From: Podarcis muralis
Taxonomy: Eukaryota
Assembly: GCF_964188315.1 (NCBI RefSeq)
Contig: NC_135661.1
Coordinates: forward strand, 43,958,001-44,022,000
Reading direction: 5' to 3'
DNA: 64,000 nt
Shown: piece after piece, positions 2,504-24,611 of the stretch
Layout: every line of letters begins with the position of its first letter
Numbering within the stretch: position 1 is the stretch's first letter
Position numbers and translations under genes: made by a program
The notes under the pieces: generated by a model
Databases searched by the model: none
Seen by the model: only the letters and a program-made list of their open reading frames with translations
What the model was told of the DNA's origin: nothing

Positions 2504-5500
2504 ATGCGGCCCCTCACGGAGGAAGAAACGCGTGCGCTCTTCGAGAAGCTCTCCAAATAGTAAGCGGGGTGGCTGTGGTGGCATTTGTGTTCTCTGGGTT
2601 CATTTTGTTGTTGTTTAGTCGTTTCCGACTCTTCGTGACCCCATGGACCAGAGCACGCCAGGCACCTCTGTCCTCCACTACCTCCCGCAGTTTGGTCAAA
2701 CTCATGCTGGTAACCTCGAAAACACTATCCAACCATCTCGTCCTCTGTCGCCCCCTTCTCCTTGTGCCCTCCATCTTTCCCAGCATCAGTGTCTTCTCCA
2801 GGGAGTCTTCTCTTCTCATGAGGTGGCCAAAGTACTGGAGCCTCAGCTTCACGATCTGTCCTTCCAGTGAGCCTGGGTTCATTAGGCTTTATGATTAACC
2901 CATGGAACTCACTGACACAAGATACCCGGATCCCCACCCAATGGACAGAGGGAATTAGAGAAATCAGTGAAGGAGGGGAAGTCTGTCTCTTGCTGTTGGC
3001 CCAGAAAGTAAAATGGAAGCGTCATTGAACCATAGCGGTGGAAGATACCGCAAAGGTCCTCTAGCCCACCCCAATGGATGTAGAGAATCACAACATTATA
3101 GGCAGGCAGCAACCCATGCTCTGTTGCGAGGAAGGGGGCACCCATCTTCCCATACAGACTGTACCAGTGTGGAATAGCTCTTCTTAATCTTCCACGGAAT
3201 ACCACTAGCTGGGAGACAACAGCAGGAGAACTAGATGGGTCGTGTTTAATGCAGAAAAATGATTACAGGGATTATAGGGAAGTCAGTATAATAGTTTAAA
3301 ATTGAAGTCTTCATATACAGGGGCAGTATGTCTTAGAAATGGCTGCTGTTCTCCAACCCTGCTTGCTGGCTCCCTGCAGGCGTTTGACTTGCTTTTGCCA
3401 GGAGGAGGAGGCTGAACTAATTGGGCATTTGGTCAAATCTAGCATAAGAGGGCAGTTCTCATGTTTTCTGGGGACTGGCTGACAGTGTGTCTCTTTGTTC
3501 CAACCTTTTTAAGTATTGGTGAGAACATCCAGCTCCTGGTTGACCGGCCAGATGGTGCCTACTGCTTCCGCCTGCACAAGGACCGTGTCTATTACCTCAG
3601 GTGAGGAGGCCCTACATTCACCCTGGGGCATGTTATTAATGTTAACACCTTCATCCATAACACACATTAAGTAAAAATAAAAGGATGGATCTTTGAACAT
3701 ATGTAAGGCTCTCTTCCTCTTCCAGAATGTACCCACGTCTTTGTGGGTGGGGAGAAGAGTAGAGGCATCTATGGGGGAAAGGAAAGGGCCTGTTTTCTTT
3801 TGTAAGATGCTGCTTGTTCTCACTACAGAGCTGCAAGGTGCTGGGAAAGAGATCTTGCTTCCCTTGTGTTTTTAGCAGCAGAAGAGCAAAAGATGTAAAA
3901 GGAGCAGAACTGAACTAAGGGAAGCTGTACTCATGGAGTCTTTCATATGCAAATGAAGGACAGAGAGGAGGGACTTGGTCTCATAATTTAACTCTGAGCT
4001 CCCGTCTTGTCTGATCCAGTTTTTGGCACATTTTATCACTTCCAGTGCAAGTGCACCACATTGTATTTGGGGACCAGGAGTGGCTATAAGGTCTTTCTTG
4101 TTTTAGGGTTGCTTGGATTAAATCCCCAAACCTGCCTTTCCATCATCTCAGTATCCCCAATTTGGTCTAGGTACCTTAAAGCTTCTCCTCTCCCCTATGG
4201 AAGCATATGACCAAAAAGCCACAATATTGGCTGCAGGTACTTGAAGTGTGCCTCAGGCCACAGCATGGTTCAGTGATGCTCTGATGGTGACTTCGGAGCT
4301 TCTGAATCTGGAGAGACTGAGTCCCAATGATAAGTCTTTGCTTTCTGTTTCTTAGTGAGAGGATTCTGAAGCTTGCTACAAACATCCCCCGAGAGAATCT
4401 GGTATCTCTCGGCACCTGCTTTGGAAAGTTCACCAAGAGCCAGAAGTTCCGACTCCACATCACTGCCCTCGATTACCTTGCTCCCTACGCCAAGGTAAAG
4501 ATGGCACAGAGGAACACTGATTTGAGGGGCACTATCGTACCAAAATAGGGGACGCGGGTGGCGCTGTGGGTAAAACCTCAGCGCCTAGGACTTGCCGATC
4601 GCATGGTCGGCGGTTCGAATCCCCGCGGCGGGGTGCGCTCCCGTCGTTCGGTCCCAGCGCCTGCCAACCTAGCAGTTCGAAAGCACCCCCAGGTGCAAGT
4701 AGATAAATAGGGATCGCTTACCAGCGGGAAGGTAAATGGCGTTCCGTGTGCTGCGCTGGCTCGCCAGATGCAGCTTGTCACACTGGCCACGTGACCCGGA
4801 AGTGTCTGCGGACAGTGCTGGCTCCCGGCCTATAGAGTGAGATGAGCGCACAACCCTAGAGTCTGGCAAGACTGGCCCGTACGGGCAGGGGTACCTTTAC
4901 CTATCGTACCAAAATAGGTTCCGCTCTGGCAGGAAGGTAAACGGTGTTTCTGTGCGCTGCTCTGGTTTCGTCAGAAGCGGCTTAGTCATGTTGACCACAT
5001 GACCCGGAAGCTGTACGCTGGCTCCCTCCGCCAATAAAGTGAGATGAACACCGCAACCCCAGAGTAGTCCGCGACTGGACCTAACAGTCAGGGGTCCCTT
5101 TACCTTTACCTAGCCTACCAAAAAAGTCAAAACACCTGTAGTGCTGTGTGGGGTGGGGACCTGCTAGCTGTTTCTTGGGAAGGAGGGTATTGTTTTTGAT
5201 TGTGCTAATCTAAGGAGGACACAGAAAGGGAACCCGTGTAGTGGTACATTTCATCTAACTCAAAGAGGATATATCTCATTTTTTTCTCATGCAGTACAAA
5301 GTGTGGGTGAAGCCTGGGGCAGAGCAGTCCTTCCTTTACGGGAACCACATACTGAAGTCTGGCTTGGGGCGCATCACAGAGAGCACTGCCCAGTACCAGG
5401 GTGTGGTGGTATATTCCATGGCTGACGTCCCCCTGGTGAGTAACACCTAGTGGGTGGGTGGGATAGTTGGACCTGAGTGAATTTGAAGTTAAGACAATGC

Positions 5501-15346: not shown

Positions 15347-18300
15347 TCACAAGAGCCCCAGATTCTTCATCGTCCGCCATCGGTCCTTGATCGCCACAGG
15401 AGTGCGGTTCTTAAAGGGGAATGCCTGGGAAATGGCTTTCCACCTCCCTTCCCCAAACTTCTTCACGCCTTCCTTAATCCACTGAGACTCTTCTGAAGTC
15501 CAGATCTAGAAAGAAGAGGGCATAGGCTCTCATGAGCAACCATCAAGTGCTGCAAAACTTGCCCCTTGTCCCCATGACAGAACAACAGATACCCCACCCT
15601 CTGGAGATGGTTCCATGGCTGTTGCTAACAGAGGATTGCCACTGACATGGGATGTAGCTCAGTAACTCACAGCAGGCAAATATCCAGCCCATATTTCAAG
15701 ACATTAAACCCAACTTGGTGGAACACTTAGTCCTCCTTCTGCAATATGTGGGTAATAAAAATAAAATTCAGCCACCTTACAGTGTGGTTGAAGAGGCCAT
15801 CAAAGATAGCAGATATCATGTGCTGAGATTGCCCAGGCTTCTTTGAAACACCTGGGTATCCAAGACCCTTGATTATTTAATTAATTAGGAGAGGCCCCTT
15901 AGTCCAGTGGTTGAACATGCAGAAGATCCCAGCTTCAAACCTGTGACATCTCCAGGTAGAGCCACGAAAGAGACACCGGGCCTGAAACCCTGTAGCACAG
16001 ACAATACTGAGCTAGATGGACCAGGATTCAGCATAAGGCAGCTTCCTATGTTCCCATTAATGGGGATTTCATCAGTTCTTTCATTTGGGAGAGGGGTCCT
16101 CATCAACTGGCCTCCATTTAGAGGGGTCTTGTCAAGGCAGGCCTATTTCTCCCCACTGGAGTGCTCAGCTCCAGACTGGGTGTAGGCTTGGTTACCTTCT
16201 TTTTCGAACCAAAGAGGGAAGTGTTGATGCTGCTGCTGCCTTCTTCCTTTGATTCTGAAACACAAATTCATTTACAAACTTTATGGAATGGATGGAACCA
16301 CTCGGTAAGCTGGTTATTGCTACTGGCTCAGCAGTTGGGAGGTTTTACCACTACTGCACCTCATCAGAAATCCAGGGTAGTGGTCAAATTCCACCCAGCC
16401 CTTGGCATGATGTGTAGAGTCAACTACTGATGGAACTATGTTAGGGTTGCCATAAATCCAGGGCATCCCAGACATGTCCTCTTTTGGGGGGCCAACAGGC
16501 CCAATTCAGGGGGGGTTTTACATTTTAAAGGACATGTCTGGGGTTGTAGGGAGGGGTTATTTATTCATTTATTGCTTGGCCAACTCTACACACCACTGCC
16601 GCCGCCAGCCCAAGCTGGGAAAAGAAGAATGTGGGTGCACTTCCTTCCCTGGCTCAAGCTGTCCTCTTTTATGCTCTTCAAGATCTGGCAACCCTAAACT
16701 ATGTGGCAAACAGTCATCCATGTTCACTCACAGTTGCCATCTCATTTTAGCACAGTTCACAAAATGGATCACTTTGTTTTGCAAGATGTTTACCAGGTTT
16801 TGAGAGTTTTGCCTTTAGCTAGTCTGGGCATTGCCTAAGCAAGCCTCCTGAAGGACCGCAGTTAACAGTTCTCTTTGCTTGCCATGCTGGCAATGTTTTT
16901 CCCCATATCATTGTGATGTCACTGGGTAATGCAATGTGAGAAGCCATCAAAACTGCACAGGTGCTTTAATTAGAAGAGTGCATGGAGCTACAATTGAGCA
17001 TCATGCAGAGCAAGAAGCCAGTGCTGCTGCTGTGCACTTGCGAGTAGGCAGTCCAAATATTTTACTTTTCTGATCCAAGAGCTGTGCCCCCAAATCCTTA
17101 CTGTGTAGAGGATACTAGCTGCTTCACCAGGCTCCAATTAACTTCTCAATTCTATGGAGCAGACAATGGGAACTCAAAGCTCCTGGCCTGACATTCAGAC
17201 ACTCACAGAGGAGAGCCTCAGCTGCTTGGCAGCTTTGCTATTTTGAGAGTAGCTTCGCTATATTTCTGCAATAGCATCTTTGCAGCAAAGAACCCTTGAT
17301 CATGCCGAGCACCCAAAACCAAGCAGACAGATTCAAACATTTGCTGCTTACCAAAAAGTTCATCCTCATCACTCCAGACCTCCTTTTCTTCATCCTGATT
17401 TAAACAAATTAGTCTCCTCTTTGCTAATCTGAATGGAACAGAGAAACACAAGTAAGGAAAGACCTACCCCACAAGGAGATGAGACGGGACTGAGCTGCAT
17501 CAATTAATGTCACACACAACCAGGATTATGGAGATGCTGGGTTAAGTATCAGACAAGGAGCGAGGTTAATTTGTCCCAGCAAACACACCACTGCAGAGAC
17601 CTATGGCAGCTTAAATATGAGCAAATAGCTGGTGGCAGAAACACAAACCCTTATCCTTGGTACAGACGGAAGGGGGGGGGCGAGAGAAATAACATTTTCT
17701 ACCTTCTGTCTGGCAACTGAAGCTAACATTCCAGGCATCTGACAAAGCAGAGTCCGGCACAGGTGTTTCTGCCACAATAAATCTGTTTAGCAATCTTTAA
17801 TGGGGCCAGAGACCGTATTGTCAATTCTGCTATCTTTGCAATCTGAGTAATAAAAATTAAGACAAGGTATGTGAACCAGATTCTCTTGCCAGCTGCTTCT
17901 ACTAGCTGGGGGAGAAGATGCACAGCGATGCAACCCTACCACTGCAAACCACCTTTGCCTTCCTTGGAGCTTCTGGGCTGAGGCCTAAGGCCTTCTAATG
18001 GATTCCTTGCAAAGGTGAAAGTTGCACCAAATGCCTCATGCTATGCCGGTTCCCCAGCAGACCCCACAGCAGTCATGGCCTCTTACCTGGGACATCGGGA
18101 GGTATTATCAGGCTGGGTGGGTATTTGGGGCTGTGCAGGCCGGACAACCAAAGTTGCCACAGGCCTCTTGGATGGAACTCGGGAGGAAGTTGGGGGGTTC
18201 CAGCTCTCTGACCCCATAACCAGTGTGCTTATGGACACTGAGCGTTCACTGGGGTGCGGCCTGGAGGCATCACGGTTCTTCTCCGTTTGGCACTTGGCTG

Positions 18301-21300
18301 CGTGGAAATCAGAAGCCAAACATGGCTTGGGGAAAGTCCAGTCCAACTTGTCCAGTTTTGAAAACTCTTCACCTGCATCTGGGGAATTGGAGAGGATCTT
18401 GAAAGCATCCCTCAGAGTAGAAAACCCATACGAGCCCATCCTCTTAGGCGAGCATCTGCAAAATAAAGAAACATCAGAAGGTTGCTCCACAAGTTTTGCT
18501 GATTTATGTTGCTGACCTCACCCCCAAGACCTTGCTCCCCTGGCATCAGGTGCAATTTGAGTCTGAGTGCTGAGAGCCAGAAGTTGTATGGCAAAACAGC
18601 TGCCCAGCAGGGCAAAGGGAGTCAAAACTGTAAGAGGCCATAGGCTGCTAACCTGTCAGAGTCACTGGAAACTGCTGAGACAGTGGCAACAGCAACCACA
18701 GCAGGCTCTGCAGCTCCACTGGTTTCTTCTTCTGGCTTTGAAGCTGCCTGGCACTCATCAACCACTTTGGCAAGCTCCAAAACAGCTCCCTTTGCCTCCA
18801 TCAAAGGCCTTGCAACTGTCTCACGGCCTCCCTCCAGAGACTTTGGCTGTTCTTCCACTGTATTTCTAGGCCCTGCCTCAGGCCGGGGCTCTTCCAAAGT
18901 CTCATCAGATCTTCCTACAGATTCAGGTTTATCTGCTGCCGCCACCTCTGAGGTTTCTTTCACCATTTCCTCCTTGCTGGCCATTTCCAAAGGATTGAGC
19001 CTGGTCTCTATCTGATCATCTGAATCCCTTTTTGCCATCTTAAACAGAGAATGTGAACACAGTTACTAGAGAACACTTCTCAACTTTATTTTCTTTTTTC
19101 TAGTTATATACAGCAGCCATTCCCAAGCTGGTGCCCTGAAGATGCTTTACCTACAATTCCCCTAAGCCCCAGTCAGCACAGCCTTATGATGCTGGAGCTG
19201 TTGGGAATTGATAGTCCAAAACATTGTCAGGTTACAAGCTTGATATATGTCAAATGTGACACTGGAGCCCTGTGCTGTTCTGCTGTGGGGTACTTTGCTC
19301 TTCACAAAAATATTTCCCAAACACATAACAGTTTGGCCAGGGAGGCTTATGTCTTAAGCCTCAGGTGCTGAATGTACTTTTTTGATCACAGTGTTTAGAC
19401 AGCAAGAGTTCTGCTGTGGCAATGTGGGTGATATTCAAGTGCTCCAGCAACACACAGAAATATATGAAGAAAGCAAGCTGCCTTATGCCAAGCCAGACCA
19501 ATGGTTCATATAGTTTCCTATCACCACACATTGAGTGACAGCGGCTCTCCAGGGTTTCAAGCAGGGGACATTCCCAGTCCTACCTAGAGATGCCAGGGAT
19601 TGAACTTGGGACCTTCTGCATGCAAAGTAGATGTTTGACTACTAAGCTATACTCCCACTACAACATCCCACATCTCAATCAAGCAGCACTCCACACCCTT
19701 GCTTACCTCTAAGAGAAAGGGCTCAGAGTCACTCAAGCAGCTTTCTAAATACAGAAGTATTCTCTGCTGGAAAGCTTTATAGGAGAAGTTCCAGATGGCT
19801 GGATGAGCGAAGTTTTTTTCTCGGATAATGCTCTGGAACATCGACCTCATTTTCTAAGCAAGGGGAAATGTTTTTAAGTACTTGCAAGCAAATTACAGCA
19901 CAGGGCAGAGGTAAAAGCAATTTTTGCAGTCATTAGAAGTTCAAACAAAACAAGCCAAGCCACCAGAGCAGTCTAGGCAATGTCAAAAATGCATGAAAGT
20001 AATGATGACTAGAGATGTGGACCACAATCTGTAGCAACATGGGCTGCTTGTGGATGCAATTTTTCTCATTGCGTAAGGGGGACAATAAACTCTCAAGTAT
20101 TTAAGACACTCACTGAATTGGAGAATGTGGGAAAGACAAACCATGACTCTGCTTTGCAGTGAAATGACCCTATAAGAGGCACATTTCAACAACAGCGACA
20201 TGAACTCATACCTGCTGAAAGCTCACCTGGGAACTTGGGTCCTTTGACATGTGTTTCCTCAAGATCTTGCTGGCTTGTTCATATTCTTTGTTTTTTAGAC
20301 AGGTTATAACAGCCTGGAGAAGAAAGACAAAATAATGGTTTGCAAGGAAGACTTTAAAAGGGACGCGGGTGGCGCTGTGGGTAAAAGCCTCAGCGCCTAG
20401 GGCTTGCCGATCGAAAGGTCGGCAGTTCGAATCCCCGCGGCGGGGTGCGCTCCCGTTGCTCGGTCCCAGCGCCTGCCAACCTAGCAGTTCGAAAGCACCC
20501 CGGGTGCAAGTAGATAAATAGGGACCGCTTACTAGTGGGAAGGTAAACGGCGTTCCGTGTGCTGTGCTGGCTCGCCAGATGCAGCTTGTCATGCTGGCCA
20601 CGTGACCCAGAAGTGTCTTCGGACAGCGCTGGCCCCCGGCCTCTTGAGTGAGATGGGCGCACAACCCTAGAGTCTGTCAAGACTGGCCCGTACGGGCAGG
20701 GGTACCTTTACCTTTACCTTTAAGGAAGACTTTGGGGGAATGTTCCTAATCTAAGAAGATACTGTTCGAGAGATATCCCTCTGGCAGTTTTCATTGTGTA
20801 ATATTAGACCACTTATTAAAGAATTAAAAAAAATTCAAGTAAGGCAAGTTAATTAAAAGTCTGTAGGCTAACAACATTGAAATAATGTATGCCAGTCAAG
20901 AAGCCAGCTTTTCCTGGATTGCCCCCGAAGGAAACAAGTTTTCAAAACATGCTGAGTTCCAATAAACTCAGGCACTCTGAGGAGACATTTCTCTCTCATT
21001 TCATCCCAGCATATAGGAATCTTGCCTCCTTGCTTCTATTAACTTCTGTGAACTTATTTAAAAGTCCAATTTAAGCATGGAGAAAAATAGGCAAGAGTTC
21101 ATCCTGGCATTGAATTAGCACCTTAATTAAACCCTTTCCTAAATATAGTTACAGATGGGTAGCCGTGTTGGTCTGCCATAGTCAAAACAAAAAAAATTCC
21201 TTCCAGTAGCACCTTAAAGACCAACTAAGTTAGTTCTTGGTATGAGCTTTCGTGTGCATGCACACTTCTTCAGATACACCTATCTGAAGAAGTGTGCATG

Positions 21301-22020
21301 CACACGAAAGCTCATACCAAGAACTAACTTAGTTGGTCTTTAAGGTGCTACTGGAAGGAATTTTTTTTGTTTTTCCTAAATATACTGCATTTTGAAACTT
21401 AAGACAGCTGTCCTCATACTAACTAGGCTGAGAAACAGTAATCAGTGCCTACAGAAGAGGAAATGCTAACACTTACTGCTTCCTTTATTTTTGTTCTTAT
21501 TTCTTCTATTATATCAATGTCTATGTCCAATTCATTCTTCATCTTATCCAAAAGAACAAGGGCATATTCAAGAGGTGTTAACTTGGTCTTGGTATCAATG
21601 GTCCAATCTTCTTCAATCCTAGACAGAAGCTGGATAATCCGCAGCTGAATGCCAATGCGTTTCTCTAGCACTAGGGGCCTTGCAAGCACAGCTGGAGAAG
21701 AACAAGACAGTCAAAACAGCCACTAAGCAAAATCAGATAGTTCAGCAAACCAGGTGTAACGAGGTTTGGGCCAGGGCACCAAAGCCTTGTCCCATATCTT
21801 GTATCCCTGGCCATATACAGACAGACAGCTTCATCCCAACATGCCCTTTGGCTCAGGAGTCACTTTGCATTTGCTTGTTTTTTTGTGTGTGATCTAAAAT
21901 ATCCTTTAGTATCTATATATACACAAACACACACATTTTTTTTTAGTGTCTTAATCTTTGTGGTGAGTGATCTTGCTGGAGCTCCCGTTTTGTGGGGCAG
22001 AAATGCGGTATGTACAGATT

Positions 22021-22073
<53 letters not shown>

Positions 22074-23424
22074 TTTTATTTATACCCCGCCCTCCCCAGC
22101 CAAGGCCGGGCTCAGGGCGGCTAACAAGCAATAATAAAATCAAGTTGAATGATTACAACTTAAAAACAAAATTAAAATACAACATTAAAATATTGAAACA
22201 TTAAAATATTTATAGACACACGGAAGTAATTACTGTAAGAAAATGAATGGTAAAGTACAGTAGTTGAGTTTCTTAGAACTACACTCCAAAGGTGCTAGGC
22301 CATTCCTAATGGTTGGCTTCTGGAAACCATCACACTCAACTACAGGCCACAGCCAAAACTCATTAAACTCAATCTCTTAATACACACATCAACATTCTCC
22401 AATTTGAAATAGATTTCAAGAGGGCTCTGAAGTTTTCAGGTACTTAGGAGGCTAAAGGCGGGTGGGGGGGGAATCCTAACCCTTCTCCTGACCATCTGTG
22501 ATGGGCTTTAGGAAGCATTCATTTAAGGGGGGATGTATGTATCCTAACCATCTTCCTGAGAATCACAGCTGGCTGTTTTCAGACCTTCCTTCTGGGTTCT
22601 GTGCTGTTGGTTAGTTGTACTTTGTGCATTTTCTTTAAAAATCATTATTGGATGGATTCCCCCCCCCCCAAATTGATTTTAGAACTTTGAATTTATTGTT
22701 ATTCACGCTTTTATACTGTATTTTATGCTGTTTTTTGTTGTATCACAATTGTTTTAAATTTGTTAGCCACCCTGAGCCCGGTTTTCTGAACCGGGAAGGA
22801 CGGGGTATAAATAAAAAATTATTATTATTTCCCTTAATTTCTAAAGGCAAATGACAAACGTTCCAGGGACACAGGCTGTATTATATTTTAAGTTGCTTTA
22901 GGTTCATTATTTCTTAAATGAAAACATCTAATGACTATTAAATGTAATATATAAATGTAAATAAGTAACAGTGACATAAGTGGAACCAGGGCTATTACGT
23001 GACATATTTTAATGTTTGATGTTTTAGTATGTTCTGATAGGTGCTGTGAGCCGCCCAGAGTGGCTGAGGAAACCCAGCCAGATGGGCGGGGTATAACTAA
23101 TAAAATTATTATTAGTTATTTACACTCACGTTCCTTAGCAGGAAATACCTTTACAGTTATTTAACCCAGCGAGAATGTTCCCCAAATGCCCCTTTCGTAA
23201 AACAAACTGGTCTCCCCACCGTATATGACGTCCCGCAGCTGGCGAAAGTCCTGGCTGCGGCCGGCCCGGAAAGCCTGAAGGGCCCGGTGGGCGTAGAAGA
23301 GGATGGCCCACCGGTTCACCGCCTCCTCCAAGGCCTTTTCGCGAGCCTCCGCGGCTCCTTCGGGCGACGCAGCAAGAGACTCTCCACGGCCACCGCCCGC
23401 CATCTTCCCTCTCCCGCGCGCCAT
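15347..23424 (-). CDS. TERF2: Telomeric repeat-binding factor 2 (567 aa, 9 coding exons)
   Basis: Exons 23424-23220, 21691-21477, 20313-20227, 19853-19707, 19038-18653, 18455-18087, 17428-17352, 16254-16196, 15505-15347 total 1704 nt with consistent phase. TRFH domain ([13 protein letters not shown]...LTPLE...[16 protein letters not shown]), RAP1-binding motif ([12 protein letters not shown]...FSKLD), iDDR-like [13 protein letters not shown] and telobox Myb ([51 protein letters not shown]). Confidence 0.96.
15888..16054 (+). mobile_element. Degraded tRNA-derived squamate SINE (Squam-type)
   Basis: A-box-like TAGTCCAGTGG, B-box-like CTTCAAACC and a 3' part GACAATACTGAGCTAGATGGACC...TAAGGCAGCTTCCTATGTTCC shared with other copies in the window. 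Confidence 0.6.
16442..16696. mobile_element. hAT-type MITE
   Basis: TIRs TAGGGTTGCCA / TGGCAACCCTA with a perfect 8-bp TSD AACTATGT (16434-16441 and 16697-16704). Confidence 0.9.
19475..19650 (-). mobile_element. Degraded tRNA-derived squamate SINE (Squam-type)
   Basis: Reverse strand reads ATAGCTTAGTAGTC...GGTCCCAAGTTCAATCCCTGGCATCTCTAGGTAG...TAAGGCAGCTT, matching the 15888 copy. Confidence 0.6.
20360..20721 (+). mobile_element. Full-length young Sauria SINE in a TERF2 intron (antisense to the gene)
   Basis: Near-identical to 4550-4900, with a (TTTACC)n tail. TSD AAGGAAGACTTT at 20344-20355 and 20722-20733. Confidence 0.92.
21148..21371. mobile_element. Penelope-like retroelement terminal fragment forming a perfect inverted repeat
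   Basis: 93-bp arms 21184-21276 and 21281-21373 with a 4-nt loop (CACC). TSD TTTCCTAAATATA at 21135-21147 and 21372-21384. Sequence (GTAGCCGTGTTGGTCTG...AGCACCTTAAAGACCAAC...AGCTTTCGTG...CTTCTTCAGATA) recalled as a squamate Penelope terminal repeat. Confidence 0.75.
22023..22130 (-). repeat. (AAT)17 microsatellite attached to a LINE-type 3' tail
   Basis: AAT run 22023-22073 followed by TTTATTTATACCCCGCCC...CTCAGGGCGGCTAACA. Its reverse complement recurs at ~22755-22830 and ~23045-23120, each ending in ATT repeats. Confidence 0.7.
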
Positions 23425-24611
23425 CCCGCCGGGAAGGGGGCGTTGGCGTAAGTGACGACATTTAACGGGTCCTTCCCCTGACGTAGTCGGTGGGCGGGAC
23501 AGGAGCGGGGAGCGCGGAGGGCAGCGTTGGCTCAGAGCCTGGGACCCTGTAGTCTCAGCACCGTCCCGGTCCCAGCGGGGCGATCTCTGCTCGCTCCTCT
23601 GCCTGGAGGCCCACAAAGTGCAGAGGGTGGAAAGGAAGGTTATGGGCAGCTCGCCCTTCGCCGCGGCGCTGCTTGCCCAGGGAAATCAAGGGGGCAGCCG
23701 GGCAGGTTCTAACAGACAGTGGCAGAGAAAGCGGACTTGGGGAGGATAGAGGACGGAGCACGAGGGCCGAGACCGGGACACTGTCTCTGGCAGGGGGTTT
23801 CTAGGGTGATGGTTGCTGCTGCAGCTGCGCTGCACGTGCGAAGTCACCAGAGGGAGGGATCAAGATGCCCCGACGGCTGGGGGGTGGGATCATCTGCAGC
23901 AGTTGCCAGATGCTCCCGCGTTGTCTCTTGTGCCTCTTCAGCCAATCAAAGGGAGCTGCTGTTTCTCCCTCTCTCGTTTCATGCTGGCCAACTCCAGGAA
24001 GGCGCCCTACGCCTCTGCCTCGGGCAGCCTGGGGAACAGGGGTCCCGGAGATCGGTCCTGCTTGGTTGGCTGGAGGAAGGGACTTGGAGATGATGGCGGT
24101 GGGGTAAAGCCCCACCTGCGATTTCTGGGTCGGGAGACGGGTTGTATATGGGGCTGGGGTCCATAAGGACTTTTCGGGCAGCCCATAATATTTCTTCCGT
24201 TGTTAATATCATTTTCTTTTCATATCACTCTGCGAAGTCTTAGCACCCGACACAACATTGCGAAAAAAAGATGGGCAACTATTCAAACTGGACCAAAAAG
24301 AGCGAAGCTGCATTAAAAGGGTTTTATTTTGCATGGGAAATGCGAGCGGTTTTTAAATACTATAAAACGCAACTTTTCGGTATGCACACGTCTTTCGGCT
24401 GCCCCTGAGCGCTCGATCTGCAGCCCTGCTGGGATCATTTCGGGGGGGAAGGCAGAATCTAATCGAGGCTGCCCCTAAACTCGGGAATTGAGAGACTATA
24501 AAAGAAGACGGAAGTTTTGCCTCTTGTCTGTTTATAGTGCAGCGCGCTTTGTAGCTCAGTTTCCGGCTCTCTGCCGGAAGTGGAGCCCATGTGCATCCTC
24601 CTTTTGCTGCC
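23425..24611. promoter_or_regulatory. Divergent CpG-island promoter region between TERF2 and DHODH
   Basis: The two ATGs point away from each other 1,187 bp apart. CpG-rich blocks at both ends, GC boxes, TGACGT near 23479 and CCGGAAGT (ETS/GABP) at 24574-24581. Confidence 0.7.

Follow-up and report, generated by a model that had tools for sequence, protein, structure and literature searches.

A splice-site shift and a later intron loss probably reshaped the docking-loop exon of TERF2 in squamates

In the lizard Podarcis muralis, the docking loop of TRF2 is encoded within a single 215-nt exon of TERF2, and the loop reads RIEE-DWTID. We think it probable that this exon arose in two events (a splice-site shift in the stem lineage of squamates and a later intron loss), and that the docking site that it encodes has likely been remodelled and still works. 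As judged from the sequences that we compared, the change in the loop appears to be a trait of all squamates, from geckos to snakes, and to be derived relative to other amniotes. The intron loss appears to be a second and later event, on the way to Lacertidae plus Amphisbaenia, that was neutral at the level of the protein.

The fused exon of Podarcis muralis TERF2

TERF2 lies on the minus strand of the window (the whole 64,000-nt stretch of Podarcis muralis DNA that we analysed). Its features, with positions in the window, are:

23220..23424, minus strand: TERF2 exon 1, coding part; ends in ...RDVIY plus G, with the donor GT at 23219-23218
21692..23219, minus strand: intron 1, retained, 1528 nt (37 joint reads and a contig)
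21477..21691, minus strand: TERF2 exon 2, fused, 215 nt; TRFH helix 2/3, loop L34 and helix 4 (splice signals, RNA-seq and alignment to human TRFH)
21608..21691, minus strand: the part of exon 2 that matches the 84-nt squamate exon (96 nt in turtle and bird); ends in the G of the split Asp codon
21477..21607, minus strand: the part of exon 2 that matches the 131-nt exon of all other amniotes examined (exon mapping)
between 21608 and 21607, minus strand: position of the lost intron (exon mapping across amniotes)
21603..21605, minus strand: Trp codon (TGG) at the human C118 position
21597..21599, minus strand: Ile codon (ATT) at the human F120 position (F162 in the 542-aa numbering)
20314..21476, minus strand: intron after the fused exon, retained, 1163 nt, with dispersed-repeat copies (33 joint reads and 2 contigs)
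20227..20313, minus strand: TERF2 exon 3, 87 nt, ends in ...DPSSQ (RNA joint and tblastn)
19853-19707, 19038-18653, and 18455 to ~18087, minus strand: later TERF2 coding exons, defined by RNA
~17430-17341, ~16255-16193, and the Myb exon at 15505-15350, minus strand: later TERF2 coding exons, from tblastn only

This locus is the TERF2 orthologue. When we compared the 71 amino acids of the exon to 1.8 billion representative proteins, we found a 457-aa protein that is 99% identical to the exon. The matching UniProt protein, A0A670IM68 from Podarcis muralis, is named Telomeric repeat-binding factor. It contains the TRFH dimerisation domain (Pfam PF08558, TRF; E = 9.5e-15), the RAP1-binding motif in the hinge (PF16772, TERF2_RBM; E = 1.2e-15), and the C-terminal Myb/telobox domain (PF00249; E = 7e-13). 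Where we sought a Gly/Arg-rich basic domain at the N-terminus, there was one short 14-residue stretch; the basic domain of TRF2 is described by Myler et al. 2021 (PMC8653790) as having arisen around the origin of mammals.

The structure, phylogeny and gene neighborhood give the same answer. For an AF2 model of residues 33-235 of A0A670IM68 (pLDDT 83), the top structural matches are crystal structures of the human TRF2 TRFH domain (TM 0.84-0.85, ~54% identity), and the TRFH domain of TRF1 matches with TM 0.70-0.75 and 24-27% identity. The 12-residue stretch with the docking loop is modelled as a loop between two helices. In a tree of TRFH domains, the Podarcis sequence clusters with the named TERF2 sequences. 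Finally, the gene order in the window is COG8-NIP7-TMED6-TERF2, with ORFs of DHODH and DHX38 on the opposite side.

The fused exon (21691-21477) is preceded by ttctccAG, with the AG at 21693-21692, and it is followed by the donor GTAAGT, which starts at 21476. It is entered in phase 1 and left in phase 0, and its translation ends in ...KIKEA. Using phmmer against the PDB, we found that it aligns end to end with human TRF2's TRFH domain (3bua 45-119; E = 2.6e-7). The alignment has a single 4-residue gap, which faces GENL, and DWTID is aligned with DCSFD, so that W faces C118 and I faces F120.

We examined RNA evidence over positions 17700-23650, using the raw reads of two Podarcis muralis runs and the contigs of two further runs. 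(One of the two contig sets, X13, is from a second, closely related organism.) The joint 23220>21691 is present in 37 reads (8+29) and in one contig, and the joint 21477>20313 is present in 33 reads (17+16) and in two contigs. Read on the plus strand, the skipped segments are bounded by CT..AC, which corresponds to GT..AG on the strand of the gene. No joint falls inside the 215-nt exon in any of these reads or contigs, none of the RNA joints point to an alternative exon between exons 1 and 3, and the RNA reads do not vary at the Trp or Ile codon. Podarcis muralis RNA departs from the assembly at only one position of this exon (21493 G>T, Thr>Lys), and the contig from the second organism (X13) has a further difference at 21659.

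The original prediction, which was made from the letters of the window alone, had read 21477-21691 as one continuous exon, with Trp at 21605-21603, Ile at 21599-21597, and a gap that faces GENL in human TRF2. All of these readings hold, given the splice signals, the RNA joints on both sides and not within, the two codons, and the alignment to 3bua. The RNA-seq data also support both junctions, and no other exon supplies GENL or Phe. The proposed arithmetic, with the fused exon as two ancestral exons minus 12 nt, is correct as well.

Some other aspects of the locus are worth describing. Position 21493 is T in all of the reads from the two runs and in both contig sets, and G in the assembly. The context is ...EEIR[T/K]KIK, and most squamates, like the UniProt protein, have Lys here. 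Exon 1 has two in-frame ATGs, at 23424 and 23403. Position 23408, which lies between them, is where nine transcript 5' ends from one RNA-seq run cluster, so some mRNAs may begin translation at the second ATG. Intron 1 includes a perfect (TAA)17 microsatellite at 22022-22073. Three intronic stretches (20287-20883, 21083-21480, and 22874-23271) have read depths that are tens of times those of the exons, with reads on both strands and many loose ends; they are dispersed-repeat copies that are expressed elsewhere, not exons of TERF2. A similar string of ORFs occurs at both 4578-4790 and 20206-20664. Also, a protein from Sceloporus undulatus (P0006) is labelled as an isoform of TMED6, yet it has the TRFH domain and the RAP1-binding motif of TRF2; the model either merges the neighbouring TMED6 and TERF2 genes or stems from read-through between them.

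Distribution of the shortened loop

To see which organisms share this loop, we took the region between L-S-R-I-E-E and T-P-L-E from all of the homologs that were returned, and we aligned 133 distinct TRFH segments. The squamates in this set are geckos (Gekko, Heteronotia, Paroedura, and Eublepharis), skinks, a cordylid, lacertids, the amphisbaenian Rhineura, the teiid Salvator, Varanus, Elgaria, iguanians (Pogona, Anolis, and Sceloporus), and nine genera of snakes.

GENL is missing from all 35 of the distinct squamate sequences. Of these, 34 have Trp at position 118, and the lone exception is a paralogue, so that every squamate TRF2 orthologue that we sampled has this Trp. At the F120 position, 26 of these sequences have Ile, 7 (from geckos) have Thr, and 2 have Val. 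Six further squamate sequences conform to this pattern, with the loops DWPID, DWAID, DWSMN, and NWITD. Across the sampled squamates, then, I, T, V or M occupies the F120 position, with Val or Met in some iguanians. In contrast, GENL, C118, and F120 are all present in 67 of 67 distinct sequences from turtles, crocodilians, and birds (GENLDC[ST]F), and in 29 of 29 sequences from mammals. Because mammals and archelosaurs bracket the squamates, the squamate state of the loop is derived.

The original prediction had described this as a change in the lizard's own lineage. It was right that the state is derived, and too narrow in its scope: the loop is not restricted to lacertids but is shared by the 35 aligned squamate sequences and the six others. 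The prediction had also allowed that the same configuration might be general in non-mammals. Our search with the 71-aa exon hinted at this, as the hits were almost only to squamates, but the sets of named full-length sequences showed the opposite, with GENL and Phe kept in turtles, crocodilians, and birds. We did not find TERF2 from the tuatara among the best 120 hits of either homolog search, so the loss of GENL could be lepidosaur-wide.

A few gene models have unusual loops. Two Ensembl models from Varanus (P0009 and P0029) have the loop GECGEP, which we rejected as a true variant because the DNA shows a read-through into the intron. An Anolis-like protein of 696 aa (P0052; UniParc UPI0002C89EA2) has the loop RIEE-DENK-DWTVD, whose 4 additional residues at the junction are missing from the other Anolis models. 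DENK could come from an alternative 3' splice site that lies 12 nt upstream. In Anolis sagrei, terf2 is reported to have been positively selected on the branch leading to it, using codeml and aBSREL (PMC7882966). Among the archelosaurs, two sea-turtle isoforms (P0141 and P0145) skip the 96-nt exon (VMQ/DCTFD, with the slash at the junction), and two manakin isoforms (P0214 and P0216) have an 18-residue insert between GENL and DCTFD.

A probable splice-site shift and a later intron loss

We compared the exons at the DNA level in Podarcis, Lacerta agilis, Rhineura floridana, a paralogue from Zootoca, Gekko, Pogona, Varanus, Crotalus, Chelonoidis, and Poecile. In the region of the Podarcis fused exon, human TRF2 presumably has two exons, of 96+131 nt. 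The tortoise Chelonoidis and the chickadee Poecile have this same layout, and in both, the intron splits the codon for Asp117 (phase 1). Pogona, Varanus, Crotalus, and Gekko also keep the intron (~470-960 nt), with an upstream exon of 84 nt and no GENL. The ends of the upstream exons, with a slash at the splice junction, are:

Chelonoidis, end of the 96-nt exon: GGA GAG AAC CTA G/GTAGAG
Poecile, end of the 96-nt exon: GGC GAG AAT CTC G/GTAGGT
Pogona, end of the 84-nt exon: GAA GAA G/GTGAGT
Varanus, end of the 84-nt exon: GAG GAG G/GTGAGT
Crotalus, end of the 84-nt exon: GAG GAA G/GTGAGC
Gekko, end of the 84-nt exon: GAA GAG A/GTGAGT

In the four squamates that keep the intron, its first bases are the former codons for Gly113 and Glu114, which are still recognisable. 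This implies that the four-residue "deletion" is really a shift of the 5' splice site: GENL was apparently lost when the donor moved upstream by 12 nt and kept its phase, with no deletion from the genome. The prediction had put the missing residues down to a genomic deletion, which is at odds with where the donor lies in these four squamates. Because the donor is common to Gekkota and the other squamates, the shift predates the divergence of crown squamates.

We propose the following mechanism. In the stem squamate, the third base of the Gly113 codon would have changed to T (GGN GAG to GGT GAG; now AGT GAG in Gekko). This would create a near-consensus donor (G/GTGAG) in the same phase as the old one and 12 nt upstream of it. 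Splicing at the new donor would drop exactly GENL from loop L34 and would regenerate the codon for Asp (or Asn). A single substitution at this third base may have sufficed for the switch of donors. C118 would have been replaced by Trp, and F120 by a non-aromatic residue, in the same stem lineage.

The fused exon has a narrower distribution. An 84+131 = 215-nt exon, flanked as usual by AG and GT, is found in Podarcis, in Lacerta agilis, and in the amphisbaenian Rhineura floridana, and the junction in all three orthologues is GAA GAA GAT TGG. This is a precise loss of an intron: the lengths of the two exons add up; Gekko, Pogona, Varanus, Crotalus, turtle, and bird all have the intron; and the adjacent introns of Podarcis are spliced. 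Because the intron persists in Gekko, Pogona, Varanus, and Crotalus, which are without GENL, the loss of the intron and the loss of GENL are separate events. The prediction of an exact intron loss was thus correct as to the intron (84+131=215) and mistaken in joining it to the loss of GENL.

The intron loss appears to have come after the split from the lineages that led to Pogona, Varanus, and snakes. It could be older within Lacertoidea, of which the loci that we compared at the DNA level cover lacertids and an amphisbaenian. The intron would have been excised precisely in the ancestor that lacertids and amphisbaenians share, so that the 84 and 131 nt were fused and the protein was unchanged. 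This could have happened by recombination with a spliced cDNA, or by a deletion between the short AG repeats that lie at both junctions.

Compared to Podarcis TERF2, the orthologous genes of turtles, crocodilians, and birds have the same exon phases and the same downstream length of 131 nt, but they still have the 96-nt exon and the intron, together with GENL, C118, and F120. The genes of Gekko, Pogona, Varanus, and Crotalus share the shortened loop with Trp and no Phe, but unlike Podarcis, Lacerta, and Rhineura, they retain the intron after the 84-nt exon. The shortening of exons by shifts in the 5' splice site and the precise loss of introns are both general phenomena. What differs here is that both steps would have struck the same junction in succession, within a docking loop whose function is characterised. 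These are two rare genomic changes, and they could be useful as phylogenetic characters, with the splice shift marking Squamata and the intron loss marking Lacertidae plus Amphisbaenia.

Other histories of the exon seem very improbable. In the window, the loss of 12 nt and the missing intron coincide at one junction, which might suggest a single event that is a novelty of lacertids or of Podarcis. We rejected this because the loci already refute it: the same change in the protein is found in geckos, skinks, anguimorphs, iguanians, and snakes, the intron persists in four lineages without GENL, and an amphisbaenian shares the fused exon. Nor do we give much credence to an artefact of assembly or annotation, or to a processed or retro-copied pseudogene. 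The loss of a single intron can hint at a partial retrocopy, but the neighbouring introns are retained and are spliced in the RNA-seq data, at a depth like that of the other exons; the genes lie in the order seen in other vertebrates; the reading frame is unbroken; and Lacerta and Rhineura have the same structure. It is also hard to believe that the squamate state is ancestral and that GENL and F120 arose elsewhere. We found no support for this scenario, while mammals and archelosaurs share GENLDC[ST]F as well as, presumably, the 96+131 layout, and the start of the squamate intron still reads as the old Gly-Glu codons. A stem-squamate splice shift with a later intron loss probably accounts for the exon instead.

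The docking groove, and a TERF2-like gene in lacertids

The closest known system is the human TRF2 TRFH domain, whose structures have been determined with Apollo (PDB 3BUA), SLX4 (4M7C), NBS1 (5WQD), and MCPH1 (7C5D). In human TRF2, the Tyr or His of the docking motif is held by E94, S98, L101, and R102; its Leu sits in a pocket formed by helices 2 and 3; R109 and D81 form hydrogen bonds; and F120 stacks on the Pro (PMC7672075, PMC4334113). S98 forms a hydrogen bond with the motif Tyr (PMC7672075). The mutation F120A abolishes the binding of SLX4, MCPH1, and Apollo (PMC7672075, PMC4334113).

Podarcis TRF2 is like human TRF2 in its fold, in the order of TRFH, RAP1-binding motif, and Myb domain, and in having D81, E94, L101, R102, and R109. 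Given the list of contacts from PMC7672075, at least 32 of the 35 squamate sequences retain each of these five residues. Podarcis differs in that its loop L34 is 4 residues shorter and in having Trp for C118, Ile for F120, and Gly for S98, which is variable among squamates. The canonical Phe at 120 is absent from all of the squamates sampled, and the loop retains the pattern D/N-W-x-(I/T/V/M)-D/N.

The original prediction had listed Apollo, SLX4, NBS1, and MCPH1 among the partners of this site. As described by Myler et al. 2021 (PMC8653790), only the motifs of Apollo and PNUTS are amniote-wide, while the motif of NBS1 arose in placentals, that of MCPH1 in primates, and that of SLX4 in haplorrhines. 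Because these three motifs arose within mammals, most of the partners that had been listed are irrelevant to the lizard. The same paper describes the F162 site (F120 in our numbering) as present in vertebrates. Its main text does not mention an exception in squamates, and we found none in other literature.

It is possible, though we think it rather unlikely, that the docking site was lost. Squamate TRF2 would then not bind Y/H-x-L-x-P motifs, and Apollo would reach telomeres in some other way or be dispensable for the processing of leading ends. This would fit with the effect of F120A in the human protein, with a loop that is 4 residues shorter, with the variability of S98, and with a residue at the F120 position (I/T/V/M) that has not become fixed among squamates. 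It does not explain why the Apollo and PNUTS motifs are reported in amniotes (PMC8653790). It also does not explain why D81, E94, L101, R102, and R109 are kept across squamate lineages that diverged long ago, or why Trp118 is nearly invariant within a D/N-W-x-x-D/N loop that is kept. Had the surface become functionless, it should have drifted in the long interval since crown squamates diverged. With the groove preserved, and a Trp that has become fixed two residues ahead of the former Phe, we favour a remodelled site that is still in use.

The conservation of the sequence leads us to consider it somewhat probable that the docking site of squamate TRF2 was remodelled and still functions. Such a site would still dock Apollo and PNUTS, via a hydrophobic platform that was remodelled, and the affinity or specificity of this docking may have changed. 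Beyond the remodelled site and the lost site, the Trp may have a purely structural role, or there may be new partners. A bolder version, which we regard as doubtful, is that all squamates (over 10,000 species) lost F120-dependent docking, so that the recruitment of Apollo and the formation of leading-end overhangs would involve a different mechanism, or that a Trp-based site has a different specificity for partners.

F120 has been treated as essential to the docking of accessory factors by TRF2, yet a whole order of reptiles goes without this Phe and without four residues of the loop. The squamate TRFH domain is a natural variant for testing how Y/H-x-L-x-P motifs are read, and whether the recruitment of Apollo depends on this reading in non-mammals.

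Lacertids also have a second TERF2-like gene, which contains introns. In Podarcis lilfordi (P0003), this copy is on a different chromosome-scale contig from TERF2. The copy from Zootoca vivipara (L008:3001-11162) encodes 439 amino acids, keeps the fused exon at 209 nt, and has the loop DFTID; Pfam did not identify a RAP1-binding motif in this protein. We considered the Zootoca gene as a processed cDNA donor, which its introns rule out. Both of the lacertid TERF2-like copies fall within the lacertid clade of the TRFH tree.
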